DNA of 64,000 nt from Octopus sinensis. Lineage: Eukaryota. Positions 2,972 through 49,340 of this stretch are shown piece by piece (position 1 is the stretch's first letter; every line of letters begins with the position of its first letter). The stretch is taken from NCBI RefSeq assembly GCF_006345805.1, contig NC_043017.1, forward strand, positions 4,216,001 to 4,280,000. The letters are read 5' to 3'. A program made the translations under genes and the position numbers. The notes under the pieces are model-generated. The model searched no databases. It was not told where the DNA came from and worked only from the letters and a program-made list of their open reading frames with translations.

Positions 2972-4654
2972 TCAGTGATACAGTTTTTCTCTTGAATGAG
3001 TGTTTTTGTGTGCAGACAAATGATGATGTCGTGAGAAAGATTTATCACAGATGTCACAATGATATGGCTTCTCACCTGTGTGAATGCGTTTGTGAGTAGT
3101 TAAGTGACTAGAGACAGCAAATTGCTTTCCACATGTATCACAGTGATATGGCTTCTCACCTGTGTGAGTACGATTGTGCTTGCTTAAGTTACCACTTATA
3201 GAGAATGATTTACCACAGACATCACAGTTGAATGGTTTCTCTCCTGTATGAACAAGTCTGTGAACAACAGAACCAGATTTTTGAGAAAACGATTTACCAC
3301 AGATATCACACTGATATGGTTTCTCTCCTGTATGAACACGTTTGTGTTTAGTTAAACATGCATTTCGATAGAACGATTTACCACAGATATCACAACCATA
3401 TCGTTTCTCTCTTGTATGAACACGTTTGTGAGAAATTAAGTGAGCAGTTACAGAGAAAGATTTACCACAGACATCACAGCAACAGGGGGCTTCTTCTGCA
3501 TGGATAAGTAAATGGTTTCTTAACTTATTACTTAAAGAGAATGTTTTACCACAGATATCACAGTGATATGGCTTCTCTCCTATGTGAATACGTTTGTGTC
3601 TAGTTAAGGTACTACTTACAGCAAATGATTTACCACAGATATCACAGTTGAATGGTTTTTCTCCTGTATGAAAGCGTTTGTGAATAGTTAAGGCACTACT
3701 TGCAGAAAAAGATTTACCACAGATATCACAGTGATATGGCTTTTCTCCTGTATGAATGCGTTTGTGTGTTGTTAAATGACCAGTTTCAGAGAATGATTTA
3801 CCACAGATATCACAGTGATATGGCTTCTCTCCTGTATGAATGCGTTTGTGTGTTGTTAAGGCACTATTTACAGAAAAAGATTTACCACAGATATCACAGT
3901 TAAATGGCTTTTCTCCTGTATGAAAGCGTTTGTGAGTAGTTAAGGCACTACGTGCATAAAAAGATTTACCACAGATATCACAGTGACATGGTCTTTTGCC
4001 TGTGTGAATACGCTTGTGTACAGTTAAGCTGCCTGGATCGGAAAATGATCTGCCACAGATATCACACTGGAATGGTTTCTCTCCTGTATGTATACGTTTA
4101 TGGTTAATTAAGTTAGTTCCCCAAGAAAATGATTCACCACAGATATCACATTGATATGGCTTCTCTCCTGTATGAATACGTTTGTGAATACCTAAATATC
4201 CATTTCTAGAGAATGATTTACCACAAATATCACATTGATATGGCTTCTCTCCTGTGTGAGTACGTTTGTGAACAGTTAAATATGCATTTCGAGAGAATGA
4301 TTCACCACAGATATCACATTGATATGGTCTCTCTCCTGTATGAATACGTTTATGATAAGTTAACGTACTATTATGAGAGAATGATTTACCACAAATATCA
4401 CATTGATATGGCTTCTCTCCTGTATGAATACGTTTGTGACTAGTTAAATCTGCATTTCGAGAGAATGATTTACCACAGATATCACATTGATATGTTCTTT
4501 CTCCCACACGAATACATTTGTGAATAGATACGACACTTTTATGGGATGTTTTGTATGATGTCTTTCCTATTTTTTGCAGTATTTCATCATGAAAATCACT
4601 CGTTTCAGGTTCTATTTTATTCTGAACATTGTTGTCACAGAATTCATTTTCCAT
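2972..4654 (-). CDS. C2H2 zinc-finger protein, 18 tandem fingers, 560 aa from the first ATG, single coding exon
   Basis: 18 repeats of C-x2-C-x12-H-x3-H, mostly with TGEKP linkers. The ORF track start at 4675 is TTG; the first ATG (MENEF) is at 4654. No KRAB/SCAN/BTB domain is visible. Confidence 0.93.
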
Positions 4655-8009: not shown

Positions 8010-8272
8010 TGTGATCCCTGTGCCGGTGGCATGTAAAAAGCACCATCCGAACGTGGCTGATGCCAGTGCCGCTGTGACTGGCTTCCGTGCTGGTGGCACG
8101 TGAAAAGTACCCACTACACTCATGGAGAGGTTGGCGTTAGGAAGGACATCCAGCTGTAGAAACACTGCCAGATCAGACTGGAGCCTGGTTCAGCCCCTGG
8201 CTTCCCAGATCCCGGTCGAACCGTCCAACCCGTACTAGCATGGAAAACAGTCATTAAACAATGATGATGATG
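8010..8272 (+). mobile_element. Family C copy (RTE 3'UTR end)
   Basis: ggttggcgttaggaaggacatccagctgtagaaacactgccagatcagactgg...(gat)n. Confidence 0.8.
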
Positions 8273-9870: not shown

Positions 9871-12779
9871 CAATTCTTGAACAAAATTAACACTCTCAAG
9901 TCCACCAATATGTATAATGACAAGGAATCTTCCAAAAATATTTGAGTAGCAATGAAACACTTTTACAACAGTGTCAAAGCTACAGACGAAGAATTATCAT
10001 ACTGTACTGCTGTATATAACAAAAAAGTCAGCAGTGAAGGTGGTTGAAACCAGTAACCCAGCCATAGCTACCACTGTGGAATTATTTGGTATTATAATTT
10101 ACCAAATCACACTCCACAATTATAAAGAAAAGAAAAACATGACTTTGTGTTAGATATTGCCAGCCAAAATTATAGCAAAATCTTTTATACATTCATGGTG
10201 AAGTTGGAGACCTGGCAAAAAAACTTGTGCTTTCCCCTGTTAACTGTGGTACAACCAAGTTTTTTGAGGCATTGCTTGTATTAAAACTAGATACAAGCTA
10301 TTAGCACTGATAGACCAGCCACTGAGGCAGTCATAAAAACTTGCTGAAGAAAACAATGGGTTAAAAGGTTCCAGAAGAAAACACAGCAAGAGGGTTTACA
10401 TCAGGTAGCCAATGGACATGGAGAAAATAAACAAGTGTTGTATTACAAGCTGTAAACTTTTGAAGACTGTTAAAATAATTTTGAAAAGAACTGTTGAACC
10501 AGTTATTTTACACAATTATGACCCAAACAGTCCCTCAGGAAGTACAAGTCAGCATTATTGCAGACAAGCAAGCAAGCTAAAAGCAGACCAGAAATTAAGT
10601 ATTGTAGGCCAAAATCAATTGCCTGAAAGTACACCTTCAGAACTGCCTTCCACTGTACTTCAATCATGATCCAAGATAAAAGAGGAACCATTTGGTAGGG
10701 CCAAAGGGAAGAGGATTGATCCAACAAATGGACGACAACACCAAGTAGTTCCACATTGTCCATTCCAATCTAGTCTGCATTATGGATCTCATTGTTGCAC
10801 ACCATTGTGAATTTATGGTTTTTAACCAGGCTGAAAACTGCAGCCCAAGTAGCATAAACAAAAAGTGTTCAAGGATGGTGTGAGTACAATAGCAGGAATA
10901 CAGAAACTAGAGACAGACAATGTAGCTCAGCCCATCATGTTCCAATTATTCTGGAAGCTGACATGAAGGCCGAACTACAGAAATGAACTCATGGCAAGCT
11001 AAGAGTATAGATGAACTTCAAAGTTCAGAACTCAGATCTGAAATACGAATTTTATTTTGTAGCAATTATAAAGGATGCCTATCCTTAAGATGCAAGAGTA
11101 TTTTACCCTGAAAAATTATGCCCAGAGTATTGGCATATTCAAGTAACAGAGTTTACTATATCACAAAGGTCCTATAGACAATCCAAATGACTTTGTCTAT
11201 TCTTTAAATTGGATGTATCATCAGTAACGTTTCAGTAAAAACTACAGTGAGCTTTGGTAGGAGTGATGTGTTGCTGACAACAATGTCATAAATTGGAAAA
11301 GCATTGACAGATACAGAAACTCTAACATGTCGTGGTAAAAGCTGAAATAGCTCAAGGACCAGTGTCTTGGAAGAATGACAAAAGGTAACCAATGGACATG
11401 GAGGAAATAACTAAATGTTGTATTACAAGCTGTAAACTGTTGAACCAGTTATTTTACGCAATTACAACCCAAACGGTCCCTCATGAAGTACAACTGACGG
11501 AGGAGTCAGAGCAGCATTTCAACAAAAGCAAAAGGGCAGCCACATGGCTCTGAGGGATGTATAGACATGCTATGCCACAGGAGAGGTTCCACCAATATAC
11601 TTTGAGATATATTCAAGTCACAAACCTATTAGGGAGATAATGCAGAAGCCTTGAATGAGTGTTTGCAAAATATACAGTGGTAATTAAAATATTATGATAT
11701 TAGGGTGTTCTCTAAGCTTGGTTCTAAGCAACACTTATCAGGACATACCAAGCTTAATTGTTTAGGGATGAAGCTCAGTCACAAGTCAGCATCAATACAT
11801 TGGACAAGATGTAGTGTAAACCACATATTACCAGGATTATGGTATACAGATGAGAGAAAATAGATAATCTCAGAAACACTATGTCTGTATATTCTGGTAT
11901 TCTGTACTGGAATAAGATAAGCTGTGGCAGGTGGCAACTTGAGCCATGTGAGCAATGATGAAATTCGATTTACAGTCTGCAGCAGGGTTTGAAAACCTAC
12001 CTAAACGGAGCTAGAGAATGTGCACTGGGTCAATAAAGTCTGTTGAGATTGAGGATCAAGAAGCCTCGAAACATGTCAAATGAGCTCCATGCCTAACAAA
12101 GAGTAACGCTGATGACCCAAGGTATGGAAAATCCTTTCAATGGACTCGTTACAATGGCAAGACAATATTTATGAACTGTCGACCTTTATAGCAACATGAA
12201 AGGTGACAAAGCAAAAAGCAGACAACCAGAGACTCTCATCATTTACACTGACCCTCAATTCCCTTAAGTTATGCATAACTCTTTTGCCACCAAACGACCA
12301 GTTCCTACCACCCCAAGGGGCACTTTGTTACAACCATCATGAGAATGATTAGATGTTGGTGACAGAATTGAAATGACTGTCACAAAGAAATAATTAAGAC
12401 AAAGAATGCATTCTTTGAGACCAGGAAATTGAAATTTGAAGAAATAATGCCTGCAGCCATATGGATTTGCATCATCTAAAAACTTGACACATGAATGTGG
12501 ATTAGCTATGGTTAATTGGCAAAATTAAGTGATATAATGACTGAGTATTTTATTGCTAATCCAGTTAGACTTGGACATATTGTAGAAAGAGACAAATCAG
12601 TCTTTAATGACCGAAAATATGTTATTATTTGCCTCAACAACAGATATTTCAAGGAACTGATAACATAACAAAGAAATGTGTCTTTATTTCTGTAGACCAG
12701 AGACACAAACACATCACTACTTATTTAAGATTTCATGATACAGTGGAACATGACTACATCTAAACCAGCTCTAACGTAA

Positions 12780-30194: not shown

Positions 30195-31680
30195 ATTACT
30201 ATCAGTACTTTCCAACAGTTTCATGCGAGATTCTACTGCATTGCTAGGTGCATCTCTTCCTTTCATATGCATGTGCAGCTTTGTCCTTTTGAAGTAAGGA
30301 ACTGTGTTTGTTACAGTGCATTTTATCTTTTGTTGTGGGGATTGTTTGCTGTTTCAAGTGTTGCTTTCTTGTTATGTCTGTTTGTTGTGTAGAATAAATA
30401 TGTACAAAGTGGGTTCTGATATTTTGTTACATAAACAGCTGTGTTTTGTATATGTTGTGAGAGATTCTGTGTTTTAGTGTTGAGCAGTGACTATGCAAAG
30501 TATGTGCTGAGCAGGTTGTGTTGTTTTATTGGGTGACAATTGTGTAAAATATGAGTGGTATGATTTGCTGCTGAAGACATTTGGGATGTTAATAGTACCG
30601 GGTGTTGACCGTGTGGAGTTTGTTTTGAACATATTATTACAGTACATGATGTTATTATTACTAAAAGTGCTTCAATGCATAATTAAATAGATATAAAAAA
30701 AAAACCCAGATATGTTATAATTGTATGAGATAGGTGGGAGGCAAGATTAAATGAGAGAGGATATATTTGTGATGTGAGATTAACTGGAATTATAATGGTC
30801 AGTTGAAGAGGAGGGGAGCAAGTGAGTGGGTGAATGATGAGTATTGTGTGATGGTAGTTGTGGTGTGGTGTGGTGGCTGTGAGATGGGATTATCCCCATT
30901 TAATTTAATTAATCTTTTGGTGAAAGCTAAGAAGTATGAGAATTTGGTGAGAAGGGAACTAAAAGCAGTCTGAAATAACGAGAAATTAAACAGTCGATTA
31001 ATAAATTAACAGTCGTAGATTTGTTGGGAAATTATTGTATATTAATAATAGATCAACAGATGTGAATTTGTTAATCAACAGAAGTAGATTATTAGATCAA
31101 AAGATGTTGGTTGATTGAGCAACTGTTTGGGGTAATTAGATTAACAGATTTGTATTTATTGAGCAACTGTTGTGATTTAAGATATAAATGGATGTGGATT
31201 TGTTGATCCACATGAGTAGATTAGCAGAGTTGCAGAAAGAAAGGAAAATCTATCAGGACAAAGCCAACAGGGAAGTCTTCGGGCAAAGGGAGGTTTTAAG
31301 ATGAAGGGGTGGTCAATATTGATGTACTAAGGCCAATACTTAGTAAATAAGGAGATGTTAAGGAAACAATAAGGGAATGTAAAAAAATTGATTTAAAATA
31401 AATGTATTTGTGGAATTTAGGGGTCTGTATTGGTGGGATTTTAGGGGACTGCACTGGCACTGTAGGATCTATATTGGTGAAGTTGAATAGTTGCATTTGT
31501 GGAAATTTAGGATACTGTTTTGTTAAAGATTGGAAATATATAGGAAGAGAGTTAAAAAAACTCTATTAATAGAATTTAGAGGGCTGTATTAGTGTAACAT
31601 AAGAGATTGCACTAATGAAGATAAGAGTTTGAAAAGAGAAGTCAAGAAGAATAAAAGTTGAATTTTTAAAAGAGAAATTT
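30195..31680 (-). mobile_element. Possible very decayed Penelope-like element
   Basis: Strand-asymmetric A/C-rich coding-like composition on minus, with a weak GIY-YIG-like remnant near 30600; no intact motif. Confidence 0.3.
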
Positions 31681-31741
31681 TGATCAATTGAGGCATGAGA
31701 ATAAAATACTAAAAAAGAAGAAAAAAAAACTGTTCAAGAGT

Positions 31742-31866
31742 TCAAGAAAGAAAGATGACAAGGGTGTCGTTAAAGATTCCACCTTCCGTATCCATACCGC
31801 CATGGATGAGACAAACTGTGTACGTTTCCCTCGAACTGCACTCCACGTTTTCTACACTTTCACACC
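31742..31866 (-). CDS. RABEPK: RABEPK-like gene, coding exon 3 (terminal; not in the ORF track)
   Basis: Acceptor tttctcttttgtcttttattgtAG; phase-1 frame gives (G)CESVENVECSSRETYTVCLIHGGMDTEGGIFNDTLVIFLS*, matching the RABEPK C-terminus (LCLVFGGMNTEGEIYDDCIV in human, from memory). Confidence 0.88.
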
Positions 31867-34409: not shown

Positions 34410-34795
34410 GAGTAGAGGGAGACCCAGCAAGACATGGGAGGAGGTGGTGAAGCATGACCTTCGAACGTTGGGCCTCACAGAGGCAATGACGTAAAGAGCA
34501 CCATTCGAACATGGCCAATGCCAGTTCTGCCTTGAATGGCTTCCATGCTGGTGGCACGTAAAACGCACCATCCGATCGTGGTCGATGTCAGCTCCTCTGG
34601 CCCCTTGTGCCGGTGGCACATAAAAAGCACCCACTACACTCTCGGAGTGGCTGGCGTTAGGAAGGGCATCCAGCTGTAGAAACACTGCCAGATCAGACTG
34701 GAGCCTGGTGCAGCCTTCTGGCTTCCCAAACCCCAGTCGAATCGTCCAACCCATGCTAGCATAGAGAACGGACGTTAAATGACGATGATGATGAG
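34410..34795 (+). mobile_element. RTE LINE 3' end: RT C-terminal fragment joined to family C
   Basis: SRGRPSKTWEEVVKHDLRTLGLTEAMT matches the end of ORF 1282-1923; followed by family C and (gat)n. Confidence 0.82.
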
Positions 34796-37372: not shown

Positions 37373-37561
37373 CATTGGAAGCCTGAAGCTCTTCCTGGGT
37401 GGATTCCTCGTGGTCTTCCGAGGGTTCCAAGTTCTCAACATCTGAACCACTTCTTTGTGATTGTGGCTGATCTAAAGTTATTTCGGTGATGGTCATGGCA
37501 AAGTCGAGACGGGGTCTTGGTGCTGGTGCATCAACGGCAATTCGGGTAGAAATCAGTGAAG
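37373..37561 (-). CDS. RABEPK: RABEPK-like gene, coding exon 2 (189 nt, phase 1-1)
   Basis: Acceptor (T)n-atttctatAG at 37562, donor AATG|GTATTG at 37372; encodes (A)SLISTRIAVDAPAPRPRLDFAMTIT...QASN, similar to RABEPK PPGRLDHSMCII. Confidence 0.85.
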
Positions 37562-37609
37562 CTATAGAAATAAAAAAAAAAAAATTGGAAGGTGGTATAG
37601 GTGTTGTAG

Positions 37610-37876
37610 AGGGTGGTAGTAGTAGTAGTGGTGTGATGATGTGAGCAGTGGTGGTGGTGGTGGTGGTGGTAGTAGTAGTTGTAGTAGTAGTAATAGTAGT
37701 AGTAGTGGTAGTATGGTGGTGGTGTGATGATGTGAGCAGTGGTTGTGGTGGTAGTAGTAGTAGTAGTGTGATGATGTGAGCAGTGGTGGTGGTGGTGGTG
37801 GTAGTAGTAGTTGTAGTAGTAGTAATAGCAGTAGTAGTGGTAGTATGGTGGTGGTGTGATGATGTGAGCAGTGGTT

Positions 37877-37908
<32 letters not shown>

Positions 37909-37929
37909 GTGATGATGTGAGCAGTGGTT

Positions 37930-37961
<32 letters not shown>

Positions 37962-38126
37962 GTGATGATGTGAGCAGTGATGGTAGTAGTAGTAGTAGTG
38001 GTGTGATGATGTGAGCAGTGGTTGTGGTAGTGGTGTTAGTAGTAGTAGTGTGATGATGTGAGCAGTGGTTGTGGTGGTAGTAGTAGTAGTAGTGGTGGTG
38101 TGATGATGTGAGCAGTGGTTGTGATA

Positions 38127-38157
<31 letters not shown>

Positions 38158-38190
38158 GGTGGTGTGATGATGTTATGGTGATTGTGATGG
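37610..38190. repeat. Compound AGT/GGT/GAT minisatellite filling the intron between RABEPK coding exons 1 and 2
   Basis: Nine copies of tgatgatgtgagcagtgg separated by variable (agt)n/(ggt)n tracts. Confidence 0.9.
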
Positions 38191-38202
38191 GCAATCACTC
38201 AC

Positions 38203-39034
38203 CTGTGTCCACTTGGTAAAAATCATTGAGTGCGCCATCTACAGACATCCCTCCAAAAATGTAGATGTTATCACCATTGGCAACAGCCCCGTGAGCAGCA
38301 CGAGCAGAAGGATGTTGACCGGATACCTCCAGCTGTTGCCATGACTCTGTCTCCAGATCCAAAACGTGGAAGTCATCAAAGAACTTGTCCTCGCACAGTC
38401 CTCCATGGATGTAGACTTTCTTGTCGATACTAACTGAGATATGTCCAAGACGAGGTTTTGGCACTGGTCCCTTGATATCCAGCGTGGACCAGGTGGATGT
38501 GGGCACACTGAAGGAGTGCACCTTAGCGTCCAGCACTGGGCTCGTGCCTTGTGCTCCACCACCAAAGACAACAAACTGGTCATCAACAGAGGTGGTAGAG
38601 TGGTGGGTCCTGGGAACTGGTATGTCCCCTTTGGGAGTTAGCGTCAGCCATTTGCTGGCATCGGTATCCAAGTATTGGATGTCATTGAGAGTGTCAGTTT
38701 GGTTTGCTCCACCAAAGATATAGATAGAGCTGGAATTATTCCGGATTGAAAACAATGACTGTTCATAGCGGGGCACGAATCCGGTGAACTCTTTGTAACC
38801 CCATTGCCAAGAGTTCAAGTCTAGAATTGGATTATCAGAGAATGTGTTATCTGGATTGGCACCACCGATTAGATAAAGCTGTCCATTGTTATTAGGTGCC
38901 TCTGAGTTGCTTGGCTTCACCACACAAGCACTATGTCCTACCCTACATTTTGGTGCATCCCCACTAGTCTCAAGCAAGTACCACACAAAAGCAACAGGCT
39001 CACTATTAGTATTGAAATAAGGCAGAATCTCCAT
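38203..39034 (-). CDS. RABEPK: Rab9 effector protein with kelch motifs (p40)-like, coding exon 1 (832 nt)
   Basis: MEILP...WYLLETSGDAPKCRVGHSAC resembles the RABEPK N-terminus; five kelch GG repeats (LIGGANPD, IFGGANQ, VFGGGAQG, IHGGL, IFGGMS); ends at CAG|GTGAGT. The three exons splice in frame to 381 aa. Confidence 0.9.
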
Positions 39035-39163
39035 GCCTCAAAAAGCAGCATATATATAAATGTAGTATATCTATGTAACCCATCCAAAAGTCATTAATCA
39101 ACTTGTCATTCTCAATTCTGTTCCTATCGTATTTCCCCCACCCATCTTATTCTTGCTCGATAC

Positions 39164-39517
39164 CTTAAAGTAAAGCTTGACGATGTGGCAGGTGCTCTCT
39201 GGCTGTCGTGAGCTTTAGAGTATCGTGCATGTCTTCGAAGCTATTTTATCTTGTCTGGTAACAACGTTTCGATCGGTTGTGACACATCCTTTTTTGCCAC
39301 CACTCCACTGTTGCCATAGTGATCCACCTGGATGAAGTTGGATGTTGACGGGAATGGTTTGTTTGAAAACTGGGAATAATTCGACCTCTTTTTCTTCTGG
39401 ATTTGCTGGAAAATTAGCAACGCCGTGTCTTCATAGCGTTGGTGTATATGGAATGTAGACTCCAGGTATGGCACCGGTGGTTTATTCATTTAGTTGCAGG
39501 ATGACAGATCACTAAAC
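39164..39517 (-). other. Putative upstream exon of the RABEPK-like transcript containing an 82-codon ORF (39241-39489)
   Basis: Long polypyrimidine tract plus ttttgtAG acceptor at 39518, AAG|GTATCG donor at 39163, candidate acceptor tttttgAG two bases before the RABEPK ATG. Confidence 0.5.
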
Positions 39518-39616
39518 CTACAAAAGACCAAAAAAAATAAATAAATAATAAATAAATAAAGGGAAAAAAAAATCAATACCAATAATTTCAATAAGATCAA
39601 AGTCAGATGTACATAT

Positions 39617-39834
39617 ATGTATTTCTTTACAACCCACAAGGGGCTAAACAAGGACAGACAAACGGATTAAGTCGATTACATTGACCCCAGTGCGTAACTG
39701 GTACTTAATTTATCGACCCTGAAAGGATGAAAGGCAAAGTCGACCTCGGTGGAATTTGAACTCAGAACGTAACAACAGACGAAATACCGCTAAGCATTTC
39801 ACCTGGTGTGCAAACGTTTCTGCCAGCTTGCCTT
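39617..39834 (-). mobile_element. SINE family A
   Basis: Reverse complement of the family A consensus. Confidence 0.85.
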
Positions 39835-39847
39835 ATATATATATATC

Positions 39848-40122
39848 GTTGCCAGCCTCGCCTGGCCCCCATGCCGGTGGCATATAAAAAGCACCATCTG
39901 TTTGCCAGCCTCGTCTGACACTTGTGCTGGTGGCACATAAAAAGCACCCACTACACTCACGGAGTGGTTGGTGTTAGGAAGGGCATCCAGCCGTAGAAAC
40001 ATTGCCAGATCAGACTGGGCCTGGTGCAGCCTTCTGGCTTCCCAGACCCCAGTCGAACCGTCCAACCCATGCTAGCATGGAAAGTGGACGCTAAACGATG
40101 ATGATGATGATGATGATGATGA
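39848..40122 (+). mobile_element. Family C copy (RTE 3'UTR end)
   Basis: Two ggcacataaaaagcacc units, the gttaggaagggcatccag core and a (gat)n tail. Confidence 0.85.
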
Positions 40123-43100
40123 TATATATATATATATATATATATCATAATTTGATCCATGGGTTGGATGGCTTGACAGGATCTAGTGAGCCACAGGGCT
40201 GCGCTGAGCTCCCGTGTCAGCTTCGGCATGGTTTCTGCAACTGGATACCTTTCCTTATGCCAACCGTATTACAGTATGTACCAGATACTTTTTCATGCCA
40301 CCAGCACTAGTGAGATTGCCAAGTAACTGGCGAGACAGAAAGAGAACAGGGAGAAAGTGGTAGGCAGGAAGACAGCTTTATACCAAGTGTTGAAAGACTA
40401 AAGAATGATAGAGGGACAAGCATAGGTGTCTTGCGAGAGATACAGGGAATACACACATTATATAGGGGTAACTGGAAAGGAGATAAGGATGGTAGTGATA
40501 GAGTTACAAAGGAAATTCTCAAGGTACAGCAAGGTGAGCATAAGAGGGGATATAGATAGTGGGTCAGGGGAAGGGAGTAACAGATGGTTAGAAATTGTGG
40601 GTAGAAGAGGTACAGTTGATAGGATATATCAGCATGGAGGGGGCGTAAGATGAAAGGTAGCTGTGGCACAGGAGGGATAGATCAGACTGTAACGGGCTGA
40701 TGAACAAGGTATAGGAGAGGTGAGGAGGGGGAGATGAAGTAATACATAAGGAAGGCTGCAGTGAGCAGGTAGGGTAGGTGGGGGTTATGGCATATATGAA
40801 AGGGTACTGAGAGTAAAAGCTGATACTTGAGGTACTTGAATAAAATATGGCAGGTATGTCATCATCGTCATCATTTTAATTACAGTAATAAAAATAATGG
40901 TTTCAAATTTTTGCACAAGGCCAGTAATTTCAGGAGAGGGGGGTAAATCGACTGGTACTTATCTTATCGACCCCAAAAGGATGAAAAGCAGAGAATGGGT
41001 TCAAATACTGGTACAAGGAGAGCAATTTTGAGGAGAGAGGGTCAAGTCAATTACATCGACCGCAGTACTTGGACTGATACTTTACTCTTCATCTCTCCAG
41101 GGCCTCACTTACTAGTGGGCACCCTTGGGAGGGGGTGGGGATAAAAAGCAAAGCAGATCTAGGCGAAATCTGAACTCAGAATTCCGAGGTCAATATTGTC
41201 TTTCATGCCTCATACATACATATATAGCAACAAACCACATTAATAACGACTATGCTGAATATGGGAAAGTTTTGCGTTCACAAAAAACCCACCGCGAATA
41301 ACAAGCCTCCCAGACATTCCCGCCGTTTTCAAACAGTTATATCTAATGCGCCCCCTTTTTTTTTTTTCTTCTTTAACATGGATTTGAGAGATTTTGGTTG
41401 CTATTTCCCAATAGTTGTCGTTGCTCGTCCATTTCTTTCTTGATTTAAGGGGAATTTTCGATCGAACGTGTAGAGGTCTTCCTCTGCTGGCTTAAACATC
41501 TCCAAAGAACAATTAAGGCGAAAGTAGCAAGGTTACTGCAGTGTTTATGCGACAATAGAACAACAAACACAGCAACCAAATAAGCCATCAATATCGATGA
41601 AGCAAACAGCTTCCTGTGAGCACAAACACCTAATTAATACAGGTGGCTGTCACGTTTAGCCCAGATCAACACTGATTGAAAGGCTCGATCAAAGACATGC
41701 TAACCACGACCATCCCGTTTCTTTCCTTTTTCCTTTGTACGAATTTATAGAACTACATTATCCAATGTGGCCTTAGACTTTTTTTTTTGTACCTTAGATA
41801 TCAACGCAGGAGTTGATGGAGATATGACTATTCCTAGCGCTCGAGCTAACAAATATTTGGACATTGAAAAGTTAGAGAAATATAACAGAATAGTTTCTAA
41901 CACAACAGCTGAGGAGAGATTGAAATAAAACATAGAAATAACCTAAGAAATAATTGTTTTAGTTTAATACATAAGAAACTGGTTCACAGTCAACGGAAAA
42001 GCTGATTATTAATTAAGCCTACGAAATTCTTGGTTAGTTAATCATTATCCTTAGCACCTAGCTTTAACCCTCAGTCGCAACACGAAACCTCCGAAATTTA
42101 CCTCTCAGTTTACCTACACGAAACAGAAACTGATCCCAATGGTTTGAGGACGAAGTCACTTCCCCGATGAAACCCAAATAAGTCGGTAAAATAAGTGCCA
42201 GGTCGAAAGGACTGTGGTCTATACGATCGATTAAACTGGGTTTAACCTTCAGTTTATTCGCAAGAAACTGAGGAAACTGACCTTCGATATAGATATAGCC
42301 ATTGGAATTTATGGAATTCAATTTTGGTTAAATCGTTATAAGCCAAGGCAACATATTATAAGTCCAAGAGTTTAAAATACCAAAATTGTTTGGAAAAAAA
42401 ATGGATTTCTAAACAAACTGAATATTAAAATGAAAATAAGAGATAAATAAATATAGAAAAGAGCAAAGAAAACTAGTTTAAAACATGCTAAAATCGATGT
42501 ATATTAAATGTAATGCATTTAATAATTTTGGTGTTTTAAATTGATTTTACCAAAGAAAGATTATAACTTTGTGGGAGATAAAAGAAACAGTTCACGATTT
42601 ATCATAGATGAATGAATATAAATGAAATTATCAAGGTTTGATAGTCAATATACATTTATACGTTTATGTATGTAGTAGAAGAGTAGAATCCAAGGAAACA
42701 AGGAATTTACTGATGTGTAGAATTCTAACCATTTGCGCACCATGAATTCCATGAGCGAATAAGTTGCCCAAAATTTGGGTTACGGATGCTTTTAAAATAA
42801 AGAATTTCTGCCTTACCTTATAATTATGGGAACGGTGGTCTTTTAATTGGGTAGCCAGGTGTTCTCGTTATTAGTATTGCAGGTGATGGTTCTGATTATA
42901 TAAACTGAGGCTTCAACCAAGGAAAGTTCTGGCTGATGGTCGCACTAAGATCACAGCGAAGTGAAAAAGAACGAAGGCAGGACGCCTTTAACTAGAAATC
43001 CAAAAATCCGTTAGTTTTGATGTGTTTGTAGTTGCCAGGAGACTGAGTATTAGTGTATCGTGGTAAACAATAGACGGGAGTGAAGACATGTAAAAACAAA

Positions 43101-44340
43101 GAGTGTATAAGGGAGTGGATTAAGATCTGAATAAAAATGTTCTTATTTATTGAAATAAGCGACCAAGCCCATGGGTGGGTATCAATGAAGAATGTGGCCA
43201 ATCAGCTAAATTAATTAAGCCTATGTTACACCAATTCTTGCAGGGTAAGCGACGTTCCGTGAGGTACTTTGTTGTTGTTGTGAGATGATGGAGATGGAGT
43301 CTGTGGTGGAAGCGATGGCGATGTTTAAGTATCTGTTGTTGATACTCTTTTCCTTCGTTCCGTGACAAAACAACTTGTGCTGCCGAACTGTGTTGTTGCG
43401 TTTTACACACTTCCGGCATGAAATTAGTGGCAGCAGCAGCCTGGAAATGGAAAAGCGAAGGAGGGGCACTTGTAACAGGGGTAGTAGCAGCAACTGGTTC
43501 TGATTGCCTCCTCTCTTATGAAGATGAGTCAGTTACAGATGCACATACATAGCAGCGCACACATACACACACATATATAATGGATATGCTTGCTTATTAG
43601 TATATGAGCGTGAAAGTATATCTGTGCCCGTAGCTTACTTTATATGTGCACGCATGCAGATGTGTACATATGAATGTATATCTAAAAAACACGCACATGC
43701 ATACATGTGCCCGCATGCACACACACACACGCATACATACAGAGACTCAGTTATGCGCACAGACACAATTTCACGCTCATACACTAACAAGCAAGCACAC
43801 GCATTAATTTCAGTGATGAAAATAAACACATACATGCACTGTATGTAGGTGGTTACTACGTTTTACCTAAATATGCACGTGATTCATAAAAATTGAAGAA
43901 TAATTCCACAAAACAGTAGTGGAGAATATACACTGACTTGAAGCAACTTAAGTAACGTAATTAGAACTTGTTTTATCAACCTCTGAAAACATGATACACA
44001 TCGCCGACGTTTGAACTCAGAAAGTTGAGACATTAAAATTATTACTACTCGGACCCTTTCCATCATATCATTCAAAGAACGCAAATATAATTAGAAACAT
44101 TTATCGATAGATATATAGATTGACAGATCGATAATAAACAAATACACATAAATAGCTATTTAGAAATTGATAGATGAGTCGACGGAGATATGTAGATAAC
44201 AAAATTGATCGATAGGTAGTGATATAAATCTGGGAAGATACATGCATATATAAACAGGATTATATATACGTGTGTGTAATATAATACACATGAATTCAAC
44301 AGATTTACAAAAAGGGCTCAATGAATAATTATAGGGAATT

Positions 44341-44686
44341 CATCATCATCATCATCATCATCGTTTAACGTCCGCTTTCCATGCTAGCATGGGTTGGACG
44401 GTTCAACTGGGGTCTGGCAAGCCCGAAGGCTGCACCAGGCCAGTCAGATCTGGCAGTGTTTCTACAGCTGGATGCCCTTCCTAACGCCAACCACTCCGAG
44501 AGTGTAGTGGGTGATTTTATGTGCCACCGACACAGGTGCCAGACGAGGCTGGCAGACGGCCACGCTCGGATGGTGTTTTTTATGTGCCACCGACACAGGT
44601 GCCAGACGAGGCTGGCAGACGGCCACGCTCGGATGGTGTTTTTATGTGCCACCGACACAGGTGCCAGACGAGGCTGGCAGACGGCA
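44341..44686 (-). mobile_element. Young 5'-truncated RTE copy, nearly identical to 605-945
   Basis: Two substitutions seen versus 605-945, plus a one-base poly-T length difference; same 63-bp units. Confidence 0.9.
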
Positions 44687-48477: not shown

Positions 48478-48870
48478 ATCATCATCATCATCATCATCAT
48501 CATCGTTTAACGTCCGTTCTCCATGCTGGCATGGGTTGGACGGTTCGACCGGGGATCTGGGAAGCCAGAAGGCTGCACCAGGCTCCGGTCTTATCTGGCA
48601 GTGTTTCTATAGCTGGATGCCCTTCCTAACGCCAACCACTCCGTGAGTGTAGTGGGTGCTTTTTACGTGCCACCCGTACAGGTGCCAGACGGGGCTGGCA
48701 TCGGCCACGGTCGGATTGGTGCATTTTACGTGCCACCTGCACGGAAGCCAGTCGAGGCGGCACTGGCATCGGCCACGATTCAGATAGTGCTTTTTACGTA
48801 TCTCTAGTCCAGGGGTCCTGGCATCTGCCAGGTGCCAGTCATAGGATTGGTTCAATTTCGATTCCGATTT
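48478..48870 (-). mobile_element. Family C copy
   Basis: (cat)n-cgtttaacgtcc... with two tacgtgccacc units. Confidence 0.85.
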
Positions 48871-49073
48871 CACTTGTTTCCATATAATAAAAATGAAATT
48901 CTGTCTGTCTGGGACCCCTGTATCTCAGTTTACATTTGCTTTACATAGACATATTACACCTTTTTTGAATCAGGATGATCTCGGGATTGAAAACCTGCCC
49001 TTCATTTGGTTCTTGAACATTCAGTATTGCTAAGGAATTTAGTGGTTCTGGATCTTTACTTTTTGACCTACAT

Positions 49074-49340
49074 CATCATCATCATCATCATCGTTTAACG
49101 TCCGTTTTCCGCGCTAGCACGGGTTGGACGGTTCGACCGGGGTCTGGGAAGCCAGGGGCTGCACCAGGCTCCAGTCTGAATCTGGCAGAGTTTCTACGGC
49201 TGGATGCCCTTCCTAACGCCAACCACTCCGCGAGTGTAGTGGGTGCTTTTTACGTGCCACCGGCACAGGTGCCAGGGGAGTCTGGCATCGGCCACAATCG
49301 GTTGGTGCTTGTAACGTGCCACCGGCACGGAAGCCAGCCA
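49074..49340 (-). mobile_element. Family C copy
   Basis: (cat)n-cgtttaacgtccg... with two acgtgccaccggcac units. Confidence 0.85.

Follow-up and report, generated by a model that had tools for sequence, protein, structure and literature searches.

Several vertebrate mRNAs are dicistronic and carry an upstream open reading frame (uORF) that encodes a microprotein, as is the case for the MIEF1 microprotein, for ASDURF from ASNSD1 and for the SLC35A4 upstream protein. MIEF1, MOCS2, AMD1 and the G-protein gamma subunits serve as points of comparison for the locus considered here, which lies in a 64,000-nucleotide (nt) stretch of the Octopus sinensis genome (NC_043017.1; hereafter the window, to which all positions refer unless another sequence is named) and contains the RABEPK gene on the minus strand. 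A first-pass annotation of the window had described an 82-codon open reading frame (ORF) in an exon-like block upstream of RABEPK, and had proposed two readings of it, as a small protein that lacks annotation and is transcribed together with RABEPK, or as a translational control module. Our analysis favors the former. Specifically, the block is probably exon 2 of the RABEPK unit and would carry a functional small-protein cistron on a dicistronic mRNA. This reading draws on purifying selection acting on the small ORF, on the widespread family to which its product belongs, on the absence of the protein from the octopus protein sets of the searched database, and on transcript contigs and a processed copy in which the two ORFs are found together.

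A conserved small ORF and its protein family

The ATG-initiated ORF within the block (Table 1) translates exactly into the 82-residue peptide that had been reported for it, and its product would yield the tryptic peptides YEDTALLIFQQIQK, with DVSQPIETLLPDK deriving from the tail. The block is directly preceded by ttttggtcttttgtAG and directly followed by GTatcg. Its acceptor reads tttgtAG/GTTTAG, and it is at this point that the homology of L001, a sequence from an octopod-like sample, begins. Several features of the block noted in the first-pass annotation were reproduced. All three frames meet a stop no more than 10 codons past the acceptor at 39517, and the GC content of 43–44% is exon-like when compared with the AT-rich flanks (~35% on either side). 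The block is also unable to extend RABEPK, as the spliced model has an in-frame TAA two codons ahead of the RABEPK ATG. An Rfam scan revealed no match in exon 2, and an exact look-up of the 82-residue product in public assemblies likewise returned no match.

Length by itself carries no weight, because the window contains 37 ATG ORFs of at least 82 codons and a frame of this size is therefore not beyond chance. This count, along with the repeats that lie nearby, is what would favor a chance ORF or a part of a repeat or transposon. Against such an origin, the small ORF is present only once in the window, shows no repeat or Pfam match, and in all of the related loci examined is syntenic and in frame, with substitutions patterned as in coding sequence. 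Given this conservation and the family described below, we consider a chance or repeat origin to be already refuted, with a negligible likelihood of being correct.

With respect to conservation, the same small ORF was observed in frame upstream of RABEPK in Octopus vulgaris (82 residues), in Argonauta hians (83 residues; L005, 9043–9294) and in the cephalopod-like transcript contigs L006 and L007 (89 residues). The window matches O. vulgaris OX597834.1 at ~95% over most of its length, with a synonymous divergence of 0.044 in RABEPK, and the small ORFs of these two species are separated by 2 synonymous and 0 non-synonymous differences. In the comparison with Argonauta, codons 1–67 differ 6 times at first, 4 times at second and 33 times at third positions (chi-square p = 1e-8), and the proportions of non-synonymous and synonymous differences (pN and pS) are 0.069 and 0.75, with synonymous sites being saturated. 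Disruption of the ORF in relatives, at a ratio of non-synonymous to synonymous substitution rates (dN/dS) of about 1, had been named in advance as an outcome that would speak against a protein; what was found is a frame that is maintained, with a dN/dS of ~0.05 between the window and L007. The non-synonymous rate of the core is 0.073 for the Argonauta pair and 0.158 for the L007 pair, as compared to 0.203 and 0.30, respectively, for exon A of RABEPK, meaning that the core evolves two to three times more slowly than RABEPK. Moreover, the nucleotide alignment of the window with Argonauta is restricted to 39490..39283, which corresponds to the ORF core, and neither the leader nor the spacer aligns. 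Taken together, these sequence comparisons indicate that conservation of the small ORF goes beyond chance and that the upstream peptide is under strong purifying selection.

To define the family, searches were made with the single sequence, with a four-sequence profile and with a nine-sequence profile, the window ORF being among the profile seeds. The single 82-residue query retrieved 1 relative, the four-sequence profile retrieved 8 (E-values of 1e-46 to 1e-14), and the nine-sequence profile, searched against 1.84 billion cluster representatives, retrieved 52 at E ≤ 1e-3 (1e-37 to 1e-4). Family members share 22–70% identity with the window ORF and include proteins from gastropods (Pomacea, Littorina, Nucella, Babylonia and Plakobranchus), bivalves (Sinanodonta, Mactra, Dreissena, Mya and Pinctada), annelids (Paralvinella and Ridgeia), a sea star (Patiria), and parasitoid and fig wasps (Microctonus and Ceratosolen). 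Examples are Sinanodonta KAL3871701.1, Pomacea PVD22097.1, Paralvinella KAK2158524.1 and Patiria XP_038046470.1. All named members are annotated as ‘hypothetical’ or ‘uncharacterized’, and no vertebrate appeared among the 30 matches that could be named. Pfam had no match to the window ORF, to any of 9 family members or to any of 4 long isoforms, and a profile search of the PDB gave nothing at E ≤ 1. Literature searches (a RABEPK uORF or bicistronic mRNA, the QRYEDT motif, a CAAX microprotein) uncovered nothing relevant in the searched library. On the strength of these searches, the window ORF appears to belong to a family of small proteins that is distributed among protostomes and an echinoderm and that falls outside any described family. 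What is new here is the definition of this family, its position before RABEPK in the molluscs and annelid examined, and its absence from the searched octopus protein sets.

Members are mostly 83–110 residues long, the 82 residues of the window ORF falling just short of this range. The N-terminal segment of the family follows the pattern (E/D)S..(F/I)(H)QRYEDT(A/S)L.IF.Q.QK, and the corresponding motif of the window ORF (RY(E/x)DT..IF) is QRYEDTALLIFQQ at residues 17–29; the shorter pattern RY.D[TAP] is found in 53 of 55 family matches. A second motif, (H/R)YGNxxVV, lies ~25 residues before the C-terminus and is represented in the window ORF by HYGNSGVVAKK (residues 57–67), and within it G59 and N60 are near-invariant across the family. 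The third feature is a C-terminal QS.(I/V)C-x-x-X ending in 45 of the 55 matches, with Met as the final residue in 21. This ending has the pattern of a CaaX prenylation box, and, given how CaaX proteins are processed, the members bearing it would be prenylated. In an AlphaFold2 model built from a 33-sequence alignment, the small protein contains one helix at residues 12–39, with a block-mean confidence score (pLDDT) of 83–90 over residues 11–30; outside this helix the model shows disorder and no other structure (mean pLDDT of 67). For the family as a whole, we take the N-terminal helix to be amphipathic and the middle to be disordered, ending in (H/R)YGNxxVV.

Longer forms were also encountered in some molluscs (the caenogastropod members P0100–P0109, together with P0115, P0130 and P0133). 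Caenogastropod members reach 218–438 residues through a Ser/Pro-rich insert of ~130–350 residues between the helix and the YGN motif. A second type, annotated as isoforms of 410–566 residues, shares the N-terminal part only and has no CaaX box. No Pfam domain was found in either type. The possibility that the long molluscan isoforms represent fusions to a Kelch protein was considered and rejected, as they contain no Kelch domain.

Evidence for both ORFs on one mRNA

Evidence for co-transcription is provided by L006 and L007, which come from two different sequencing runs and in which the small ORF and an intact 373-residue RABEPK ORF are located 81 nt apart. A 21-nt difference between the two contigs, at a junction 25 nt before the small ATG, points to alternative 5′ splicing. 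Bases 1–22 of L006 are Illumina adapter sequence (CAGACGTGTGCTCTTCCGATCT), and the first bases of this Logan contig are therefore not biological.

Additional support is found in L001–L003, which match the window in order from 43057..42996 on to the donor at 42817, then directly from 39517 (within an ambiguous G), unbroken to 38805, and subsequently at 38513..38334, 37504..37424, 31840..31627 and 31420..31366. Introns of 3.3 kb, 0.6 kb and 5.5 kb are missing from these sequences. L001 is a processed copy, derived from an mRNA in which exon 1 and exon 2 were joined to RABEPK exons A–C and the 3′ untranslated region. The junction in L001 also confirms the acceptor at 39517, within the ambiguous G, and defines exon 1, which is collinear with L001 bases ~20–317 at 68% identity. 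With respect to the acceptor and donor originally assigned to the block, the acceptor is therefore backed by both the processed copy and L006/L007, and the donor at 39164 is a candidate.

The two halves of L001 have fared differently since copying. Its small ORF (346–621) is intact at 91 codons and ends in CTIV, whereas the RABEPK part is broken. The first 20 codons of the latter already contain a stop and a 2-nt deletion, and it has also lost ~245 nt and acquired additional stops. Relative to the window, dN/dS is ~0.3 for the RABEPK part and 0.13 for the small-ORF core, and identity over the core is 84%, as compared to 68–75% for the rest of the copy. These values, though derived from small numbers, suggest that the small ORF of L001 stayed functional after the copy was made. 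Overall, both ORFs probably reside on one mature mRNA in cephalopods, as shown in L006/L007 and in the source mRNA of L001, which would make this mRNA dicistronic.

The arrangement extends beyond cephalopods. In the linked loci, the small ORF is followed, in the same orientation, by the exon with which the coding sequence of a RABEPK orthologue begins, and the match to RABEPK starts at residue 1. The gap between the small ORF and RABEPK in these loci is 242–257 nt in L008–L013 (bivalve-like by sequence), ~340 nt in Paralvinella, ~500 nt in Sinanodonta, ~570 nt in L014, ~700 nt in Argonauta and ~1050 nt in Pomacea. For Plakobranchus, the small protein and RABEPK are recorded on contigs of equal size (735,397 bases). 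In Patiria and Microctonus, no Kelch gene was found near the small gene. The linked loci, together with the unlinked genes of Patiria and Microctonus, indicate that the arrangement is common to molluscs and at least one annelid and that the family itself is distributed more widely. In Patiria miniata (L017), the family member at 10001–10306 lies 770 nt upstream of a 202-residue ORF on the same strand (11079–11687), which has a weak acetyltransferase match and may represent another two-ORF unit.

This distribution bears on whether the small gene might be a separate, monocistronic neighbor with its own mRNA end, in which case RABEPK would be driven by a promoter of its own and read-through would explain the contigs that contain both ORFs. 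Such a reading is in keeping with the annotation of two separate genes in Sinanodonta, Pomacea and Paralvinella, with the unlinked members in Patiria and Microctonus, and with RefSeq entries in which some molluscan members have their own LOC identifiers and several isoforms. It is harder to reconcile with L006 and L007, which independently hold both ORFs at the same 81-nt spacing, or with L001, in which exon 1, the small ORF and RABEPK exons occur together. In addition, a search for AATAAA or ATTAAA in the 206 nt between the two ORFs of the window found no such poly(A) signal, and the distance to RABEPK is just 0.2–1 kb in every linked locus. We therefore regard a monocistronic neighbor as unlikely.

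In terms of how exon 2 is joined to RABEPK in the window, the first-pass annotation had placed the block 127 nt upstream of the RABEPK start exon. The sequence AG/GCATGG at 39036 does leave a 127-nt interval with GT..AG ends after the donor at 39164, which makes it a candidate intron; L001 retains the stretch, with AT where the donor has GT. The acceptor, tttttgAG, also carries a disfavored G at −3. Splicing would place the two ORFs 79 nt apart (206 nt if unspliced), as compared to 81 nt in the L007 mRNA, and retention would add five ATGs, with two of the ORFs that they open extending past the RABEPK AUG. The close agreement of the 79-nt gap with that of L007, along with the five ATGs of the retained form, favors splicing, and a 127-nt intron is plausible on these sequence grounds.

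The layout of start codons on the spliced model is consistent with translation of both ORFs. The small-ORF AUG is the first in the mRNA save one at the extreme 5′ end of the exon-1 homology. As had been pointed out from the window alone, its context is weak (U at −3, A at +4) and that of RABEPK is strong (G at −3 and G at +4 in the window; A at −3 and G at +4 in L007). U at −3 is shared by 10 of 12 loci and A at +4 by all 12. The further upstream ATGs that had been remarked upon are also present: four lie between the two starts in the spliced model, opening ORFs of 6–23 codons that all end before the RABEPK AUG, and L007 contains three, likewise with short ORFs. In the L008 group (L008:9960–10003), a 7-codon mini-ORF (ATGGTGGCGAGAGTTCATCAATGA) has a TGA that overlaps the ATG of the small ORF (ATGA). 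As every member examined has A at +4, ATGA is found at the start of each.

We propose that exon 2 would supply the RABEPK unit with a complete and functional upstream cistron. Scanning ribosomes, once past the extreme 5′ end of the leader, would meet the small-ORF AUG first, and its weak context would allow some of them to translate the small protein while others scan past. Leaky scanning could then bring ribosomes to RABEPK, as could reinitiation after the short out-of-frame ORFs or the use of an alternatively spliced mRNA, with skipping of exon 2 representing a possible alternative route. Since the small ORF must affect the number of ribosomes that arrive at the RABEPK AUG, some regulatory side-effect is to be expected.

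A regulatory side-effect differs from a purely cis-acting role, in which the conserved peptide would stall in the ribosome tunnel to tune RABEPK translation and no free protein would be made. The position of the ORF ahead of the main ORF, its weak AUG context and its conserved sequence are what such a uORF might be expected to show. Nonetheless, it is the N-terminal 67 residues that are conserved here, and the tail next to the stop, itself frameshifted, varies most. Relatives in Patiria and Microctonus stand alone with no RABEPK downstream, the caenogastropod members are several hundred residues in length, the C-terminal CaaX box is a trait of a released protein, and L001 keeps the small ORF intact beside a decayed RABEPK. 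The translational control module put forward as the second option in the first-pass annotation is thus very improbable as the sole function of the ORF.

The C-terminus of the Octopus protein

The Octopus member departs from most of the family at its C-terminus. The KK that follows the YGN motif and the Cys codon are separated by 60 nt in L001 and L007 and by 59 nt in the window and O. vulgaris, and the zero frame of the window therefore ends in ...LLPDKIK. A 1-nt deletion in Octopus would account for this displacement of the CaaX box from the frame. CTIL and a stop are still present in the −1 frame at 39215..39229 on the minus strand, with the same arrangement in O. vulgaris, and the last 27 residues of protein P0001 match the window in a second frame at this −1 tail (Table 1). 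Among the 33 aligned members, the window ORF is the only one without a Cys box in frame. Argonauta, which is outside this alignment, has the aligned Cys followed by an immediate stop, such that the aaX residues are missing. The Octopus product is most likely a non-prenylated 82-residue form that keeps the helix and the YGN motif, with residues 1–67 under strong constraint.

One way in which the ancestral tail might be regained is suggested by the run A AAA AAG, which has the X XXY YYZ phase relative to the small-ORF codons (GCA AAA AAG). A −1 slip at this site would exactly restore the tail, the −1 frame being open for 24 codons up to the ancestral stop. The run is shared with O. vulgaris only, which is 99% identical here, and is missing from L001, L007 and Argonauta. 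The 101 nt that follow it were searched for a stimulatory RNA structure and fold at −16.3 kcal/mol (z = −0.45 versus shuffled sequences), with no excess stability. The A AAA AAG heptamer also works poorly in eukaryotic systems. Given the lack of a stable structure, the absence of the heptamer beyond O. vulgaris and its weakness in eukaryotes, the idea that frameshifting returns the CaaX tail to part of the Octopus products has very little to recommend it, and we assign it only a slim chance.

Loss of the box also raises the question of whether the upstream Octopus copy is a decaying relic that is becoming a pseudogene, its role having passed to a retrocopy of the L001 type. The 1-nt difference relative to L001 and L007, which places CTIL out of frame, would fit with this idea, as would the missing aaX residues of Argonauta and the state of L001, where the 91-residue ORF ending in CTIV is kept and the RABEPK part has acquired stops, frameshifts and deletions. 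Codons 1–67, however, are constrained between Octopus and Argonauta at the pN and pS values given above, in two lineages that both lack the box, and not one non-synonymous change separates the window from O. vulgaris. The likelihood of a relic is accordingly low, and a functional cistron that has lost its CaaX box is the reading we retain.

Several observations weigh against a dicistronic unit with a functional upstream cistron, and they temper the confidence with which we propose it. The annotations of Sinanodonta, Pomacea and Paralvinella model the small gene and the Kelch gene separately, and co-transcription in the species of the window itself is argued from homologous sequences and from the processed copy. 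The 127-nt splice is a candidate, and a transcript that retains this stretch would make a poor RABEPK mRNA. The weak −3 context is also seen in the unlinked Patiria and Microctonus genes, for which reason it is not evidence for a mechanism when taken alone, and reinitiation after an ORF of 82–91 codons is normally inefficient. Finally, the absence of the family CaaX box from the Octopus ORF, together with its variable tail, could mean relaxed constraint or a changed function.

Gene structure, neighboring features and described systems

The features of the RABEPK unit are collected in Table 1. Identity of the downstream gene is clear, as the 279-codon ORF has strong Kelch-repeat Pfam matches and its product shares 99% identity with the ‘rab9 effector protein with kelch motifs-like’ of O. 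vulgaris (P0002). The three coding exons sum to 1146 nt, or 381 codons and a stop, which is the length of the O. vulgaris protein.

Table 1. Features of the RABEPK unit and its upstream cistron in the window
Feature	Position	Strand	Details
Exon 1, non-coding leader	42817..43090 (roughly)	minus	L001 collinearity; donor AAG/GTAAGG; 5′ end approximate
Intron 1, 3.3 kb	39518..42816	minus	Missing from L001 between exon 1 and exon 2 homology
Exon 2 of RABEPK unit (probable)	39164..39517	minus	28-nt leader, small ORF and 77-nt tail
Small-protein cistron (probable)	39241..39489	minus	82 codons and TAG; conserved core codons 1–67
A AAA AAG run	39289..39295	minus	In X XXY YYZ phase of the small ORF
Ancestral C-terminal tail, −1 frame	39215..39289	minus	Reads GCVTTDRNVVTRQDKIASKTCTIL then stop; CaaX box CTIL out of frame
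Candidate 127-nt intron	39037..39163	minus	GTatcg...tttttgAG
RABEPK first coding exon	38203..39036	minus	ATG 39034; codons 1–277 and first base of codon 278
RABEPK coding exon 2	37373..37561	minus	tblastn of P0002 and splice sites
RABEPK last coding exon	31742..31866	minus	To TGA; tblastn of P0002 and splice sites

Several repeats are found in the surrounding sequence. A tandem array at 37581–38211, in the intron that follows the first RABEPK coding exon, has units ~44 and 132 nt apart and is strongly strand-asymmetric (GC skew of ~0.9, G-rich on the plus strand). Within intron 1, an interspersed repeat at 39600–39850 (minus strand) lies directly upstream of exon 2, with similar copies near 2072, 27826 and other positions; ARAGORN detected no tRNA in this repeat. 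A second family, with units of ~280 nt, is represented at least 8 times in the window (for example, 44340–44617, 48481–48762, 49071–49337, 34529–34794, 8017–8272 and 585–874) and is also present between the small ORF and RABEPK in Argonauta (L005, 9338–9490). Roughly 500 nt upstream of exon 1 is an imperfect inverted repeat (43578–43806) with 92-nt arms that are 73% complementary, for which an Rfam scan gave only sub-threshold hits to low-complexity miRNA models (mir-297, mir-466 and mir-3149), ~550–660 nt upstream of exon 1. The microsatellites (ATG/CAT)n and (TA)n at 40098–40230 produce runs of Met or His in six-frame ORF lists and are non-coding. Further away, a single-exon ORF at 2972–4654 (minus strand) encodes 560 residues with 18 C2H2 zinc fingers.

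With respect to significance, the small ORF adds to a well-known trafficking gene a protein-coding gene that is missing from the searched octopus protein sets, and it defines a small-protein family with no Pfam entry, solved structure or paper in the searched library. It also offers a testable dicistronic animal mRNA, the gene order being common to the cephalopods, bivalves, gastropod and annelid examined. Linkage that is kept for so long usually reflects shared regulation or function, and it can therefore be tested whether a helix-plus-CaaX protein works with RABEPK at membranes. Survival of the small ORF alone in L001, along with CaaX loss in both Octopus and Argonauta, represents a natural experiment on the uncoupling of two cistrons. 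A more ambitious and decidedly speculative proposal, which we think has some chance of being right but is more apt to be wrong, is that the small protein and RABEPK have been an ancient functional pair on one unit since before the split of molluscs and annelids. An ancestrally prenylated microprotein would serve the Kelch propeller of the Rab9 effector as an adaptor or membrane anchor. Once an octopod retrocopy like L001 had preserved the prenylated small protein alone, the upstream copy would have been able to shed its CaaX box.

Comparison with described systems helps to place the locus. Like the G-protein gamma subunits, the small proteins comprise fewer than ~100 residues, are largely helical or disordered, and bear a C-terminal CaaX box as a likely membrane anchor; they differ from them in having no sequence similarity and no Pfam or PDB match, and in the case of Octopus the box is out of frame. 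The upstream peptides of AMD1 (AdoMetDC) and the fungal arginine attenuator share an upstream position and a conserved peptide with the small ORF, but those peptides are short, cis-acting and conserved up to the stop, whereas the small ORF is long, has a variable tail and has relatives with no downstream gene. A parallel in the antiquity of the linkage is found in MOCS2A/MOCS2B and SNURF–SNRPN, where two unrelated proteins are specified by each mRNA in an arrangement that has long been kept. The MOCS2 products are subunits of one enzyme, whereas any functional link between the small protein and RABEPK is hypothetical, and here the ORFs do not overlap. As for MIEF1, ASDURF and SLC35A4, the likeness is one of kind and consists of a conserved ORF of ~70–100 codons in the 5′ leader that is under purifying selection and missed by standard annotation. 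The Octopus-type protein has no sequence relationship to these microproteins and also occurs as an independent gene in other phyla, and what sets it apart is a linkage to RABEPK common to molluscs and an annelid and an ancestral CaaX box in the small-protein family.

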